From: Paraphysomonas bandaiensis
Lineage: Eukaryota; Protista; Chrysophyceae
Direction: 5' to 3'
DNA: 64,000 bases
Assembly (NCBI GenBank): GCA_965644295.1
Contig: CBFFRP010000032.1
Span: 1 to 64,000 of the forward strand
Below the pieces are notes generated by a model, which saw nothing but the letters and a program-made list of their open reading frames with translations, was not told the origin of the DNA and made no database searches. The position numbers were made by a program, and so were the translations under genes. Shown one piece after another: positions 44,024-50,498 of the stretch (position 1 is its first letter; every line of letters begins with the position of its first letter).

Positions 44024-44423
44024 GAAGTATAGATGATCTGTCCATTTTCTGGGAAATGTGAGACGTATCTATAAACATACATGACACGTGGGCATATAAA
44101 TGTCTGACCCATCCATACATACATAATACATACATACGTGCACAACATCTAGTAGAATCAACTGTTTTGTATTCCGTATTCTGTGTTATGGAGAACGGCA
44201 TACGGGTGTCTTGATGGTTCCATATGTTACAATGTGCACCATCTGTACTGTACGTTTCTGTCAACTTTTATCCACGCACTCGTTTTTCCACAAAAACACT
44301 CTCTCCACACCCATTCCGACGACTCTCCAATTCTGACACGAGCATTCCACAAGCATTCCATTCTACCCCTGGTGGACTCAAATTATACCCACAACTCCAT
44401 TACACTGTACAATATGTAACAAT

Positions 44424-45965
44424 ATGGCTGCAGCTCATCACCACGATGGTGGCGATATATTCGTGTTTGCTCCTTCCGAGAATTTGGTGGCCGCTCACCT
44501 CCCATCACTCCGCGATGTTGTTCCAGAACACACCGTACTTCACGGTGGGCAGGAAAGGTTCAAATCGAACACAAGAAATCCACCACAAGATGGTGTGAGG
44601 TGTCCTGGGTGTCTTCATCATTATACCATCTGGAAGGGATTCCTGAAACACGTGCGCGCAAAGAAAGATGTTCGACGGCTACCAATAACAAATGACGAAG
44701 AAAGGGACGACGTGTTCTACTGCAAAGCCGCAGAGATGAAAAAAGCAAGTAAAGATGATCGCTTGGAGTGCACTCGTTGTCCTGTGTGCATGTCGAGTGC
44801 GGAGTTGCAAGCAGCATTAAGGCACGACTGTCCCATCAGCAACGCCACCACATTCATACCTCCAATGGGCAGGTGCAAGGGTTGTGATTTAATTGTTAAA
44901 GTGAAGTGTAGCTGTCCCGTATGCAATGTGGCGCCCCATAGTGTTGAGTTTAGGATTCAGCCTGATCCGTGGTCGGATTGTCCCTACCCTAAGTATCCAC
45001 AGCATGCTGAAGTCATCTCGGAGTACGATAAGAAGCGGCGACAGATTTACATGAATGCACTGGCCGAGCAGACTCGAATGAACAGCACTAGAGCGTCTTT
45101 TGAGGTCAATAACTTTGCTCTAATTCATTTGAATAAACTCCTGCAAGAGCCGGATGGATACATTGTGCTGTCAGAGTTGGAGCGCCAAGCACCTGGATTT
45201 CTTGAGCGTTGCGGGGCATCAGATACAGTTATGTCCAGAGTTCGGGAAGAACACCAGAAAGACCAGACGGACCAACGATCTTTTTTACTTCATCCCCATG
45301 CCACCTACCGATTAGTTGAAACCATGAAGAATCTTGAGGCGGCCATTGATATGGATGTTCCGATTAAGTCTTTGATTGCAACCATTTCCCGACATAATGC
45401 TGTGCGCCTATTAACAGAGGAGCAACGAAAGGCACTGGACGACGCATCTGTGCGCGCGGTTGCTTCGGCTCCACCGGAATATGTGGAGGGAGTTACAGAC
45501 ATTCCTAATGCAGACGATGGGTTGGCTGCCAAAAGACGCCGCATGGAGGAGAACGGTTGTGCTCCAACCAGTGCCCCTGAGCTGAGTGCAGTTGAACTCC
45601 AGGCCCGTGAGGAGACTGTGACTTTCCTGACATTCTTCAGACAACAGTTGTACGCTCACTTTGTTGCTTTAAATATTGGAAGAGAGGCCCAGGTGTTATA
45701 TGAGGACTGCAAAGAAACAATCGCACGGCTCCTCACCATCAGTGTCTCAGAAAACAAGCGGCTTGCGGACAGAATTTTTTCCCTGCTACATCCAGTGTCG
45801 GCTCCACTGTCGCCAAATAACGCGTACAGTCACGATACAGAGATGGACTTGAAAGGTTGTGTGGCTGCTGTCAATGCGGTGGTGGTTGTGTTGAGGCCTG
45901 ATTTAGTTCATGATTTGAATGAGCTGAAGCTGGAGCCCACTTCAGATGGCACTTTCCCGGAGTAG
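44424..45965 (+). CDS. Unknown 513-aa transposon-borne protein with Cys/His-rich (Zn-binding-like) N-terminal third and a putative NLS
   Basis: Intronless intact ORF; CPGC-x12-H, CTRCPVC, HDC, CKGC, CSCPVC..H; AAKRRR; the start codon lies inside the left TIR. Confidence 0.8.
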   Translation: MAAAHHHDGGDIFVFAPSENLVAAHLPSLRDVVPEHTVLHGGQERFKSNTRNPPQDGVRCPGCLHHYTIWKGFLKHVRAKKDVRRLPITNDEERDDVFYCKAAEMKKASKDDRLECTRCPVCMSSAELQAALRHDCPISNATTFIPPMGRCKGCDLIVKVKCSCPVCNVAPHSVEFRIQPDPWSDCPYPKYPQHAEVISEYDKKRRQIYMNALAEQTRMNSTRASFEVNNFALIHLNKLLQEPDGYIVLSELERQAPGFLERCGASDTVMSRVREEHQKDQTDQRSFLLHPHATYRLVETMKNLEAAIDMDVPIKSLIATISRHNAVRLLTEEQRKALDDASVRAVASAPPEYVEGVTDIPNADDGLAAKRRRMEENGCAPTSAPELSAVELQAREETVTFLTFFRQQLYAHFVALNIGREAQVLYEDCKETIARLLTISVSENKRLADRIFSLLHPVSAPLSPNNAYSHDTEMDLKGCVAAVNAVVVVLRPDLVHDLNELKLEPTSDGTFPE

Positions 45966-46486
45966 ACCCTTAGCATTGTGTCTTTTCTTTTTATAAATTA
46001 GTTTGTTTTCTTATTATAGCCTGCTGATTCCAGATATAGCCTTTTATTATTATTGCTTTTCGCTGTTATTATTATTCAATCGTTGTCAAGAAGTTTTATA
46101 TAAATTTTATTATTGTTAATTAATGTATTAATTATTAATCATATTATGTCATCACTAGAACTGTGTAATAATCACACATTCACCCAAATTTTTAATGGAC
46201 TCATTTTGAGCCCAAATTACACAAGCTTACTCTCATCACTATTGCCGTGAGCACTGCGCTTTCAATTTCGTATGAAACTAGTAATTACAATGTGAAAAGT
46301 GAAAAGCATTCCACCGACATATAGCTAATAATATATTAAACAGATTAATATCATTTGCAAGGTATTGCAATATACTGTTCCAAATTACTTAAGAATAATA
46401 ATTTAGAATAGTTAAGAATAAATAACCAGATTAATAAATACTAAGTGCAGCGCAGTCACAACGTGCACTACAACCACATAGCACCC

Positions 46487-47443
46487 CTATGATTGTTCAC
46501 CGCGGTAAGGTGTGTACGGATACGTCGGGACATAAAAGTGTGCAGCTGCCATATACTGTTTGACGTCAAACCTACTAATTGTATCCAAAGCCGTCCTTAA
46601 CCAAAACTTTAATGAATTGGGCGTGACTTGTGGACTATGCTCTTGAAGAAACTTGTCCACGTAACTGAATACCCATTCCACTGGTGCAAAGGTAGGGGAC
46701 GAAGCAGGACGAAAGACAACATAATGTCCAGCATCCGTTAGAGCTTTGACCACAACTCCAAAATGAGCACTCAAGCGATCCATTGTAATGACACGTCTCC
46801 CAGTACCCTCAAGACTGGGAATTAACAGGTACACAACAAAGTGGTAGAATACCTCCGAAGTTGTGCCATGTGGATAAAATATGTTGTTGATCACACCTTT
46901 GCGAGCGTCGATAGCAACTAGCAATGAGTAGTGGGGCAGCATGCGGGCTTTGTTTCCAATAGAACTGCTTGAGGTGCTCCCAAGAGAGTGACCACAGACA
47001 CGCCGTGAATTGGAGACGTAAAAGCCGCTTTCGTCTAAGTCCACAATGTCCCGATAATAAACCCCAAGCACACCCGGTCGCAGTGAATGATCAGGCGGAT
47101 TGACCCAAAATGCCACTCTATCATTCTCGTCAAGATACTTGGCGATGTACTTCATATGCTTTTTCTTGAAACCAAGTCGGAGGAGTGCTCTGCACACTGT
47201 GGATCGGCTCACAGTCACGTTGCAAACAATTCTCAGAAACTCTGCGCATTCAAGCAGAGTGGTATCCTTAAAACAACATTTGTACCAAAACAATACTGTA
47301 TATTGATGCCTAGACAAACCATGTTGTGATATTCCTTCCTCTGCCTCAACAGGCTCATGCTCAACAAGTCTGTGATCAATTCGAAACACCGGATGATCAT
47401 AAATGAAGTCTTCAGAAAGATCCAATACAGGAGCTGCAGCCAT
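46487..47443 (-). CDS. IS630/Tc1-type DDE transposase (DD33E)
   Basis: Winged HTH TTLLECAEFL..VSRSTVCRALLRLGFKKK; catalytic VDLDESGF, VITMDRLSAH, RPASSPTFAPVEWVF with 33 residues between the second D and E. Confidence 0.92.
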   Translation of the reverse strand: MAAAPVLDLSEDFIYDHPVFRIDHRLVEHEPVEAEEGISQHGLSRHQYTVLFWYKCCFKDTTLLECAEFLRIVCNVTVSRSTVCRALLRLGFKKKHMKYIAKYLDENDRVAFWVNPPDHSLRPGVLGVYYRDIVDLDESGFYVSNSRRVCGHSLGSTSSSSIGNKARMLPHYSLLVAIDARKGVINNIFYPHGTTSEVFYHFVVYLLIPSLEGTGRRVITMDRLSAHFGVVVKALTDAGHYVVFRPASSPTFAPVEWVFSYVDKFLQEHSPQVTPNSLKFWLRTALDTISRFDVKQYMAAAHFYVPTYPYTPYRGEQS

Positions 47444-47637
47444 ATTGTTACATATTGTACAGTGTAATGGAGTTGTGGGTATAATTTGAGTCCACCAGGG
47501 GTAGAATGGAATGCTTGTGGAATGCTCGTGTCAGAATTGGAGAGTCGTCGGAATGGGTGTGGAGAGAGTGTTTTTGTGGAAAAACGAGTGCGTGGATAAA
47601 AGTTGACAGAAACGTACAGTATACACTACATAGGCAA

Positions 47638-48161
47638 TAGTATAGGAGTATACGGGTTATCTCATAGTATAGGAGTATACGGGTTATCTCATAGTATAGG
47701 AGTATACGGGTTATCTCATAGTATAGGAGTATACGGGTTATCTCATAGTATAGGAGTATACGGGTTATCTCATAGTATAGGAGTATACGGGTTATCTCAT
47801 AGTATAGGAGTATACGGGTTATCTCATAGTATAGGAGTATACGGGTTATCTCATAGTATAGGAGTATACGGGTTATCTCATAGTATAGGAGTATACGGGT
47901 TATCTCATAGTATAGGAGTATACGGGTTATCTCATAGTATAGGAGTATACGGGTTATCTCATAGTATAGGAGTATACGGGTTATCTCATAGTATAGCAGT
48001 ATACGGGTTATCTCATAGTATAGGAGTATACGGGTTATCTCATAGTATAGGAGTATACGGGTTATCTCATAGTATAGGAGTATACGGGTTATCTCATAGT
48101 ATAGGAGTATACGGGTTATCTCATAGTATAGGAGTATACGGGTTATCTCATAGTATAGGAG
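47638..48161. repeat. 27-bp minisatellite, left half (19 full units plus a partial)
   Basis: Unit TAGTATAGGAGTATACGGGTTATCTCA; one variant unit (TAGCAG). Confidence 0.98.
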
Positions 48162-50498
48162 TCCTACCACACAAGTCCAGAAAAATGAATTCTGTTTTTT
48201 TGTATGGGAGTGTGTGTAGGAGGGGGTTGAAGTGGAGATATTCTGGTCTGCAGAATTCAGCGTTTATGTACGTGATTCTGCGTTAATGTACGTCCCTCTT
48301 AACGACCATATCGAGCGTATGGCTGCATACAAGTACTTATATATATATAGTCTTGTAGAGGACTCTTATTACTACTATGTGCCTTACTGACAATATCTAC
48401 CGTGTGTAATCAGGTCAGTATTCCCAGTGAATAAGCGAACGTCATGAAATAACAAATATGTTCCAGTGGCCACCATAAGGCGCGATGACAACACCTAAGA
48501 ACTGTTTAAGTCTCGATATTAGGCAGTCTAATATCCCCTACCTCTCATTGGGTGGCTTCATACTCCACTACGGTTGCCACAAAGGTGTCTGGTATTACAC
48601 TTACCAGGGTCAGTCAGAGCAGTGTAAATTGATTGATGATAATTAGAATTGTTGTAGTTTCATAGAGATGTGCACAAACAGGTGATGGGGGAGTGCTTAA
48701 TTCCTGTCAGTTGTTTTTTTTGCGATCCGAGCCAGGAAATGCATTGACTGTGGCCACTGCCTTCGAATTGATTGGCAATCGAAGCAAGCCTTTGTAGTGC
48801 TACAGTTGAGAGACGTGTTGATGCGTATGCCGAACGGCAATGTCAGTGATGCCGTCAAATTACTTTTTAATGTTTGCATGTGTTGAAACGTTAAATATCG
48901 GGATGTACCAAAACCTTCATAAGATCAATTAGAAGCATATATATCGAGAGGACAAAACAAGAGTTATTATTGATAGTGATCCAAGTCAAGAACTATCCAG
49001 TATCAAGAATTATAGTCCAAAGCTTCATGGAATGTACAACTTGTGAAAGGTTTAAACTTGGCACAAAGGTGTACATGAATTTCTAAATGAGAAAGCAAAG
49101 AAATTAACTTCGATTAGTTTGGATATATATATTTTTAGTAAGCCAATCTTGCCTATGATTATTATTTCCGTAATTAAGTGTTTGAATCATCGCTTGGGGG
49201 TGTTGAAGTGCTGTCCGAGAAAGTTTCCGGTAGTTTTAATATTTATAGATTTTGTAGTGCGTATGTATTGAGTTATATCCACACATTAAACTACAACCAA
49301 CTCCATAATGGGGTAATAATATAATAAAAGCATACAGGGGTACTGAGGGGAGGTTGTAAGGCAATGAGGTAGCATACATGGGTGCCTTGGCTAGTGACTA
49401 TACCTAGGCAGTACGCAGAATTAGGAGAGAGGAGTGCATAATATTCAATTGTTATAATATATATATATATATATTTTCAAGATTATAAAAGCATTATAGA
49501 CATAGAATAGAGTGTACTTTGATGCTTTGGTTTCCTCTGGAGGCGATATGGGGGCTGATGGGGTGGTGCATGTAAGTGCTTGTGATTGGGGTATAATGTA
49601 CAATTAGTAGTTGGTGTGAAAAGAGTTTCCATACGTGTCAACATGTGTATAAAGCCAAAATATAGCTAAACATACAATGTTCATATTGTATACAATGTAC
49701 TTGTCATGTTTTTCATCATCTGGAGGTCACCTAACAGCCTCTGGTGGTTGACATATAGAGGAGAACTATATCTGTATTGGAATAGTAAATTACAAGCTTA
49801 TTATTATTATTTCTTGGGTTACCTGCTGTCACAGTATATATACTTATGATTTATATGTTTTTACGATATCTATGAAGGTGCACTCGGCTCAAGGGCTCAC
49901 TGTGATGAATACTGGTGATATGCATATTAAGGGTGTGAGCGTGTGTCAATGTGTTTCAACTCTGTACATATTTTCATACTCTCACTATAGAAAAGATAAA
50001 AGTTATACGCTCTATGAGTATAAATATATATAGACTCCGTATATTTAAGTCAACTTTTGGCCTTCTACTGCTCTTCTTCTTCATACTTACCAGATCGCCT
50101 GCTTGCTCAATAAGATGCTTAATAACGACTGGAATAACCCACTTAATGATGCCACGAATAAACCTCGTCTTATCTTTCCTTTAAAGGGCTGTGACATTGC
50201 TGTCTTATGTCGATATTGTCTTGTATTTGTTGCTATCTTTTAATGTGTCTATCACGTCTTTTATCTCTTCCACAGATAGAGCTCCATTATTGGGGTAAAC
50301 CGTATGCAATAAATTACCTTTTTTACATCTACCCTTTTCTTAATAGAATGCTGTATTTTTAGGGTAAAAATAGTAAAAATAGTAAAAATGGGAGAAAAAA
50401 ATAAATTGCCGCCATCCTTTAATCTGAGGGTGTGGGGAATAGTGAGTGGTGATGATGAGTGAGAACTTTTCTCGTTTTTCTGGACTTGTCTGGTAGGA
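48162..50498. mobile_element. 2.3-kb non-autonomous TIR element inserted in the minisatellite
   Basis: TIR TCCTACCACACAAGTCCAGAAAAA / TTTTTCTGGACTTGTCTGGTAGGA (1 mismatch in 24); 5-bp TSD AGGAG (48157-48161, 50499-50503); no long ORF inside. Confidence 0.85.

Follow-up and report, generated by a model that had tools for sequence, protein, structure and literature searches.

The 64,000-nucleotide stretch of Paraphysomonas bandaiensis DNA analyzed here (the window; positions 1 to 64,000 of contig CBFFRP010000032.1, assembly GCA_965644295.1) contains, at positions 44248 to 47619, a 3,372-bp DNA transposon with two convergent genes. One encodes a DDE_3 transposase of 318 amino acids (aa) and the other a 513-aa partner protein, and both start codons lie inside the terminal inverted repeats (TIRs). 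Taken jointly, the structural and evolutionary data make it very probable that this is a real two-gene family with a conserved partner and with transcripts launched from the TIRs. For the further claim that the partner is required for mobility, we judge the chances to be evenly balanced. The existence of a true two-gene element, put forward in the original prediction from the DNA sequence, is upheld by the presence of both genes in the full copies, by the convergent pair in all informative distant relatives, and by purifying selection.

Structure, copies, and selection

A repeat finder placed two inverted arms at 44246-44436 and 47431-47621 (191 nt, 100% complementary), each consisting of a 189-bp TIR and one flanking TA. 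The perfect repeats and TA duplication that had been read by eye were thus confirmed. The TIR begins CTGTACGTTTC at both ends. Two intact, inward-facing open reading frames (ORFs) appear in the ORF list (Table 1), and their ATGs each lie 176 nt into their own TIR. As predicted, both proteins open with MAAA inside the repeat (MAAAHHH in the partner and MAAAPVL in the transposase), and because the repeat runs on past the ATG through ATGGCTGCAGCTC, the first four codons are common to the two genes. The predicted AT-rich gap between the ORFs measures 521 bp rather than 520 bp and has a GC content of 29%, versus approximately 48% within the ORFs. When the TIR was inspected for inner direct repeats of the inverted repeat/direct repeat (IR/DR) type, the best candidate was a 13-nt match of 77%, which is at chance level.

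The 318-aa protein matched Pfam family PF13358 (DDE_3) over residues 133 to 268 (E = 2.6e-8; score, 34.3 bits; cut-off, 28.6). Alignment with five relatives showed D137 (DLDESG), D222 (MDR/MDN), and E256 (VEW) to be invariant; these residues were assigned as the catalytic triad by motif likeness (DESG, MD(R/N)xxxH, VEW) rather than from a structure. The D222-E256 spacing is 33 residues, one fewer than in canonical Tc1. Since the DDE_3 triad occurs together with a TA duplication and TIRs, the sequence places the element in the IS630/Tc1/mariner group, in agreement with the original assignment. The transposase N terminus is shorter than those of relatives L041 and P0007. Most of the first helix-turn-helix (HTH)-like stretch (VSxSTVxRID) is missing, the second is retained, and Pfam returned no HTH family at E <= 1.

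The TIR was used as a query against the window's own 62.6-Mb assembly. Full-length copies were found on contigs C32 (the window), C297, C259, C185, C78 (two), C388, C2, and C433 (two). Every full copy found (about ten) carries both ORFs, which answers the co-occurrence check that had been proposed. The nine copies that were extracted and aligned share 99 to 100% identity across 3.37 kb and can be sorted into three subfamilies. In each of the seven fully bounded copies, TA adjoins both ends and the surrounding DNA is unrelated, and several copies are inserted within (TGTA)n tracts. The structure of the element (TIRs, TA, and paired ORFs) is far beyond chance, and the TIR pair with bilateral TA is found again at seven other fully bounded sites. 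An empty site for the window insertion was not found in the assembly search. The transposase is intact in 10 of 10 copies and the partner in 8 of 10; the remaining two (C78b and C433a) carry a 1-bp deletion in a T6 run, which may be real or may reflect homopolymer errors. The two C78 copies (C78:164549-171388; L032) are arranged head to head with 97 bp between them; one matches the window copy at 100% identity, and the other differs from it by one deleted T. The identity of 99 to 100% among copies, with two copies 100% identical, indicates that the element has been recently active, as had been suspected.

Changes between copies were then examined by counting each variable site once, against a synonymous-site share of 0.23. 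The transposase had five synonymous and no nonsynonymous changes (P = 6e-4), the partner had five and three (P = 0.018), and the two genes together had ten and three (P = 5e-5). These mostly synonymous changes demonstrate that both genes were under purifying selection during subfamily divergence, and the dN/dS-type comparison that had been suggested therefore favors a functional second ORF. Transposase-only copies, variable cargo, and a neutrally evolving 513-aa ORF had been named as grounds for abandoning the two-gene interpretation; none of these was seen in the full copies. Substitution density in the spacer is approximately twice that of the ORFs, and the element's only multi-base indels (7 bp and 12 bp) are located there. 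In subfamily C, one TIR substitution occurs in the left arm (44373) and again in the right (47494), which indicates that the arms are kept alike; other TIR substitutions are confined to a single arm.

The same genome contains a solo transposase copy (C282:28022-28987; L081 1498-2463) with an open frame and 91% aa identity to the element (dS, 0.18; dN/dS, 0.25). This locus has a degenerate left TIR upstream, has neither a partner gene nor a right end, and adjoins a kinase-like gene. At least four further DDE_3 families are also present, with 350- to 372-aa open frames in several copies each (C134, C241, C247, C551, and C249; C14, C128, C217, and others).

Conservation and features of the partner

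The association of the two genes was followed into distant relatives. An unbiased scan of JGI metagenome contigs, seeded with the transposase alignment, yielded nine loci. A profile search of six-frame ORFs detected a convergent partner homolog in all seven loci with room downstream of the transposase (L043, L044, and L046 to L050); the contigs of the other two end approximately 400 bp or less past the transposase stop. Contigs found by way of partner relatives gave the same picture. L041, the P0025 contig, and L086 have a partner followed by a convergent DDE_3 gene, as does L042, where the transposase C terminus was confirmed by profile. In L038, which was found by way of its transposase, that enzyme is 50% identical to that of the window element and the convergent gene matches partner residues 202 to 458 (29% identity; E = 2e-24). 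L040 and L085, which have a partner but showed no intact transposase in the vicinity, and the P0016 contig were uninformative or decayed. Across these lineages, identity to the window element is 36 to 50% for the transposase and 20 to 30% for the partner, indicating that the partner evolves faster. The convergent pair in every informative distant contig identifies the second gene, as judged from these sequences, as a long-standing partner of the transposase clade and not as neutral or variable cargo or a recent capture. The clade has so far been seen only in aquatic metagenomes and in the P. bandaiensis genome. In locus L044, a perfect inverted copy, 115 nt long, of the 5' coding part of the transposase (1-115 and 1854-1968) is fused to the 3' half of the partner; either the element has been rearranged internally or the assembly went wrong across the repeat.

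The partner consists of a Cys/His-rich N-terminal domain (residues ~10 to 180), a helical middle, a disordered basic linker, and a C-terminal four-helix bundle. An exhaustive HMMER search of 1.84 billion representatives recovered 29 relatives, 15 of them at E <= 1e-10. All ten that were looked up are metagenome or Logan singletons described at most as "hypothetical protein," and none has an NCBI or UniRef record. A word-indexed protein search with the partner gave no match. The family alignment revealed a conserved N-terminal (Y/F)xFxP motif followed by QxGxxCPxC, by PCxxCPVCxxxxxLxxxxxHxC, in which C116, C119, C122, and H134 are nearly invariant, and by CxxCx7CxCxxCNVxxH. The helical part contains conserved DGYIVLAE and TIxRHNAVRxLT motifs, and the variable linker, with its basic patch (KRRR in the window element), leads into the helical C terminus.

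These features did not connect the partner to a known family. Pfam assigned the 513-aa protein to no family (top match, Zn_SUZ12; E = 0.35) and gave only stray zinc-ribbon matches for 17 family members (E >= 0.002). A protein-language search produced weak C2H2-like leads, all below 0.9. AlphaFold, supplied with the family alignment, modeled N-terminal residues 1 to 195 with confidence (pLDDT, 86; pTM, 0.79). This domain had no significant match in the PDB (Foldseek), in VIA-wide comparison, or in the Atlas, the best VIA hit being a Dof zinc ribbon with Z = 2.9, and the whole model matched nothing significantly among PDB and Atlas structures. The C-terminal bundle resembled many helical bundles at Z <= 7.6, the ACDC domain among them (Z = 7.6); scores in this range are common for such folds and uninformative. 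Cytochrome c nitrite reductase, which arose from a PDB sequence profile, was rejected because it showed only chance CxxC(H) matches. Since the cysteines and histidines are conserved across the family, the N-terminal domain probably binds zinc. The original description of this ORF as zinc-finger-like is fair for its Cys/His pattern; by its sequence, the partner stands outside C2H2 and every other named zinc-finger family, with no significant curated model or fold match. A complex prediction for transposase and partner scored 0.00, which weighs neither for nor against binding.

At C169:238617-240257 (L068 1618-3258) lies an intact partner paralog of 546 aa, 34 to 40% identical. Of the convergent transposase beside it, only four broken fragments remain (L068 3500-4482), and a search for TIR remnants around the paralog found none above shuffled controls. 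This partner seems to have been kept without the enzyme and is a candidate domesticated gene.

Terminal repeats, start codons, and transcripts

A second family of elements helps to divide the TIR into parts. Members of this family (L036 501-6007 on C58, L037, and parts of L035 and L030) have an outer 41 bp identical to that of the two-gene element and lie beside TA. They are 5.5 kb long with 1,226-bp perfect inverted arms and a 547-aa ORF, and their insides are unlike the two-gene element. The 547-aa ORF had no Pfam or PDB match. This nonautonomous family is probably moved in trans by the transposase of the two-gene element. Because the outer 41 bp are common to it, the sequences suggest that at most 41 bp of the TIR form the transposase recognition end, in which case something else would account for the repeated state of the inner 148 bp. 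That part could be retained for expression or through repeated copying of one end onto the other. In three two-gene copies on C259 and C433 (L030 3849-4849 and L035 501-1601), the outer 35 bp of one TIR is replaced by approximately 1 kb of the 41-bp-end family. All three have one and the same flank; they are either copies duplicated after the chimera formed or haplotigs.

Start codons inside the repeat were also found outside P. bandaiensis. The contig ends of L086 (ENA ERZ19395456, 1-2872), whose transposase is 38% identical to that of the window element, form a perfect 55-nt inverted repeat that holds an ATG at position 36 and its mirror at 2837. Both genes open with MKDPRI, and the transposase starts at the repeat ATG (MKDPRIF...). 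On the partner side, the repeat ATG starts a run of 20 codons up to a GT; the frame bearing the homology opens only at 146 and lacks an ATG upstream of the conserved N-terminal region. The repeat ATG would be joined to this frame by an in-phase 50-nt intron (GT at 96, AG at 145). In L041, the common repeat ends approximately 120 to 125 nt before the ATGs, whose distances from the contig ends are 155 and 149 nt. In L047, the repeat is at least 79 nt long and ends approximately 95 nt before the ATGs, again at matching distances. The location of the ATG outside the repeat in L041 and L047 indicates that a shared start codon is not needed for the two-gene design. In the C282 solo copy, the upstream sequence is homologous to TIR positions 19 to 185; the best-kept part is the 45 nt before the ATG, and ATGTAA is also retained there. 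From these comparisons, the shared ATG appears as a feature that is recurrent or ancestral in part of the clade and not universal, and the mirrored leader geometry appears as the more general one. Searches of full-text literature turned up neither this clade nor any Tc1/mariner element whose two start codons lie in the TIRs; they left Repbase and subscription journals uncovered and are no proof of absence.

RNA data are consistent with expression of both genes. Words of the element sequence were detected in 20 public runs from 14 studies, including poly(A)-selected marine metatranscriptomes, and the share of element words was approximately 0.8 in RNA runs versus 0.85 to 0.94 in DNA runs. Contigs from four RNA runs (four studies) were placed on window positions 44100 to 47630. 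A poly(A) library (X10) yielded two separate contigs, of 1,685 nt for the partner and 1,035 nt for the transposase (Table 1), both of which stop exactly 30 nt inside the TIR. This is where a common repeat would branch in Logan assembly graphs, which we take to use k = 31, so these ends are assembly breaks and not RNA ends. A second run (X17) contains contigs of both genes, and its partner contig extends to 44390, since the transposase 5' end is uncovered there and creates no branch. A third (X18) has a 1,048-nt transposase contig and a 239-nt partner piece, and a fourth (X19) has four fragments of the partner only. No contig in the four runs covers 44248-44389, the mirrored outer right TIR, or 46092-46233, regions that DNA carry-over would be expected to cover. 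At their 3' ends, partner contigs stop at 46091 and transposase contigs at 46426 or 46234-46240, and no overlap of convergent transcripts was seen among them. The contigs fit transcription of both genes starting in the inner half of the TIR, in line with the predicted 5' ends inside the repeats, and from them we infer promoter activity of the TIR. An additional 510-nt X10 contig (record 3), placed on window 46668-47139, matches just the two ends of that segment and is diverged between them; it is a related transposase of another element or organism in that sample.

Table 1. Coordinates of the two-gene element and its parts in the window
Feature	Position	Strand	Evidence
TA target-site duplication, left	44246..44247	.	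TA on both sides in 7/7 fully bounded copies
Left TIR, 189 bp: leader, ATG, and first 4 codons of the 513-aa gene	44248..44436	+	100% complementary to 47431-47619
Outer 41 bp of TIR (mirror, 47579-47619)	44248..44288	+	Identical at the ends of the nonautonomous family
ATG-TAA mini upstream ORF, 4 nt 5' of the main ATG (mirror in right TIR)	44414..44419	+	Sequence read
Partner gene, 513 aa	44424..45965	+	ORF list; 29 relatives; RNA contig 44407-46091
AT-rich spacer with both 3' untranslated regions	45966..46486	.	GC 0.29; convergent RNA contigs stop inside
Transposase gene, DDE_3, 318 aa	46487..47443	-	PF13358; triad; RNA contig 46426-47460
Right TIR, 189 bp: leader, ATG, and first 4 codons of the transposase	47431..47619	-	Inverted-repeat match
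TA target-site duplication, right	47620..47621	.	TA on both sides in 7/7 fully bounded copies

Immediately to the right of the element, window positions 47630-48170 contain approximately twenty 27-bp tandem units (ATAGTATAGGAGTATACGGGTTATCTC).

Proposed mechanism and relation to known transposons

We propose that the element belongs to the IS630/Tc1/mariner group of cut-and-paste DNA transposons, is autonomous, has recently been active, and carries two convergent genes. The outer 41 bp or less of each TIR would be the end recognized by the transposase, and the inner TIR would act as a mirror-image leader, each repeat launching one gene inward. The two mRNAs would then have a common 5' untranslated region, ATG, and first four codons, and both would end in the AT-rich spacer. 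We infer that the partner, inherited with the transposase, most likely has a role in transposition, whether it assists as a cofactor in DNA binding or targeting or acts as a regulator, and we model its action on that of the Myb-like protein of PIF/Harbinger elements. A bolder version can also be put forward, somewhat short of an even chance in our estimate. The element would represent a widespread, unrecognized marine-protist clade with an obligate two-component system, in which a zinc-binding partner brings a transposase lacking part of its HTH region to the ends, the TIR combines recognition site, promoter, leader, and start codon, and the partner has been domesticated at least once (C169).

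Several observations weigh against the main proposal. Partner-less nonautonomous relatives and one solo transposase (C282) exist, and L041 and L047 lack the shared ATG. The partner has no recognizable DNA-binding family in the Pfam and fold comparisons described above, and neither an assay nor the complex prediction ties it to transposition. The metatranscriptome contigs give no transcription starts, strand, or level, and DNA carry-over is not fully excludable. The 513-aa gene might alternatively be a passenger, that is, a host gene captured once, kept through linkage to an active transposase, and without a part in transposition. The partner contains no known DNA-binding or transposition-related domain, the C169 paralog remains intact beside a decayed transposase, so that the protein was kept without the enzyme, and elements with identical 41-bp ends carry other cargo. 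However, the linkage and the convergent order persist down to 36 to 50% transposase identity in every informative contig, and the changes between copies are mostly synonymous. Moreover, no homolog was found outside a transposon setting, transposase remnants lie even beside the C169 paralog, and the ten looked-up relatives are absent from annotated proteomes. We therefore regard a passenger origin as improbable.

The partner might instead be a regulator or anti-silencing factor, such as a copy-number repressor or target-site selector, with the transposase alone sufficient for movement. Tc1/mariner transposases, including those of Tc1, Mos1, and Sleeping Beauty, generally suffice alone, the nonautonomous family has only 41 bp of end in common with the element, the many insertions in (TGTA)n tracts leave room for targeting, and the copy number is low (approximately ten). 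The present data would be the same under a cofactor role, however, and the transposase is without the first N-terminal HTH stretch of L041 and P0007, which hints at DNA binding in trans; on balance, we consider a purely regulatory partner rather unlikely. About as doubtful, in our judgment, is the idea that start codons within the repeat are a tolerated by-product of end homogenization, in which one end is copied inverted over the other and the arrangement has no regulatory meaning. Long arms that take in coding sequence do recur (1,226 bp in L036 and 115 nt in L044), the ATGs of L041 and L047 lie approximately 95 to 125 nt inside the repeat's inner edge, and the 44373/47494 substitution is found in both arms of one subfamily. 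Against homogenization alone, the ATG lies in the repeat in L086 also, whose transposase is only 38% identical, and within the TIR sequence of the diverged C282 copy, conservation is highest over the 45 nt preceding the ATG. The ATGs of L041 and L047 also lie at nearly equal distances from their ends, so that the mirrored geometry is kept despite differing sequence.

Tc1/mariner is the textbook one-protein transposon and the basis of gene-transfer tools. If the two-component interpretation is true, a clade with a long-kept second protein would mean that two-component machinery can arise in this superfamily as well. Such a clade would also link a new protein fold to transposition and provide a compact natural case in which a single repeat is the recognition end and also supplies two genes with leader and start codon. 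With its identical copies, intact ORFs, and marine transcripts, the element seems to be active; it is therefore open to direct test and might serve as a genetic tool in marine protists.

The element resembles Tc1, Tc3, and Sleeping Beauty in its DDE_3 D,D,E triad, its TA duplication, and its TIR-bounded cut-and-paste layout, and TIRs of approximately 200 bp are also found in Tc3, Minos, and Sleeping Beauty-type elements. Canonical Tc1/mariner elements encode one protein, whereas this clade adds a conserved, convergent second gene. In addition, the D-E spacing is 34 residues in the canonical elements and 33 here, a convincing IR/DR inner repeat is lacking, and the TIR holds both start codons. 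The original prediction likened the arrangement to maize MuDR, in which mudrA and mudrB are convergent and each is launched from a TIR of approximately 200 bp that acts as a promoter. The likeness of two convergent genes stands, as one of layout only. MuDR has a Mutator-type (Mutator-like element [MULE]) transposase and a 9-bp duplication, in contrast to DDE_3 and a 2-bp TA, and the element does not belong with it. The two MuDR genes do not have a shared start codon inside the repeat, and mudrB is confined to Zea, whereas the partner described here is conserved across the whole clade.

Among elements related to Tc1/mariner, TBE and Tec of ciliates carry extra ORFs, TBE encoding a transposase, a small ORF product, and a zinc-finger protein (PMC7325037, PMC4724952). 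TBE and Tec have three ORFs and reside in ciliate germline nuclei, and TBE has telomere-like ends; compared with them by description of the ORFs only, the window element has two ORFs, ordinary TA insertions, a marine protist setting, and poly(A) transcripts. A two-ORF layout is also known from PIF/Harbinger (PMC4482050). Those elements use DDE_Tnp_4 and a 3-bp TAA/TTA, unlike the DDE_3 and TA found here, and the partner has no Myb/SANT match in Pfam, which places the element outside that group. Nevertheless, PIF/Harbinger elements, in which both proteins are needed for transposition, likewise combine a DDE transposase with a second, faster-evolving protein inherited with it, and they provide the best working model for how the partner may act.

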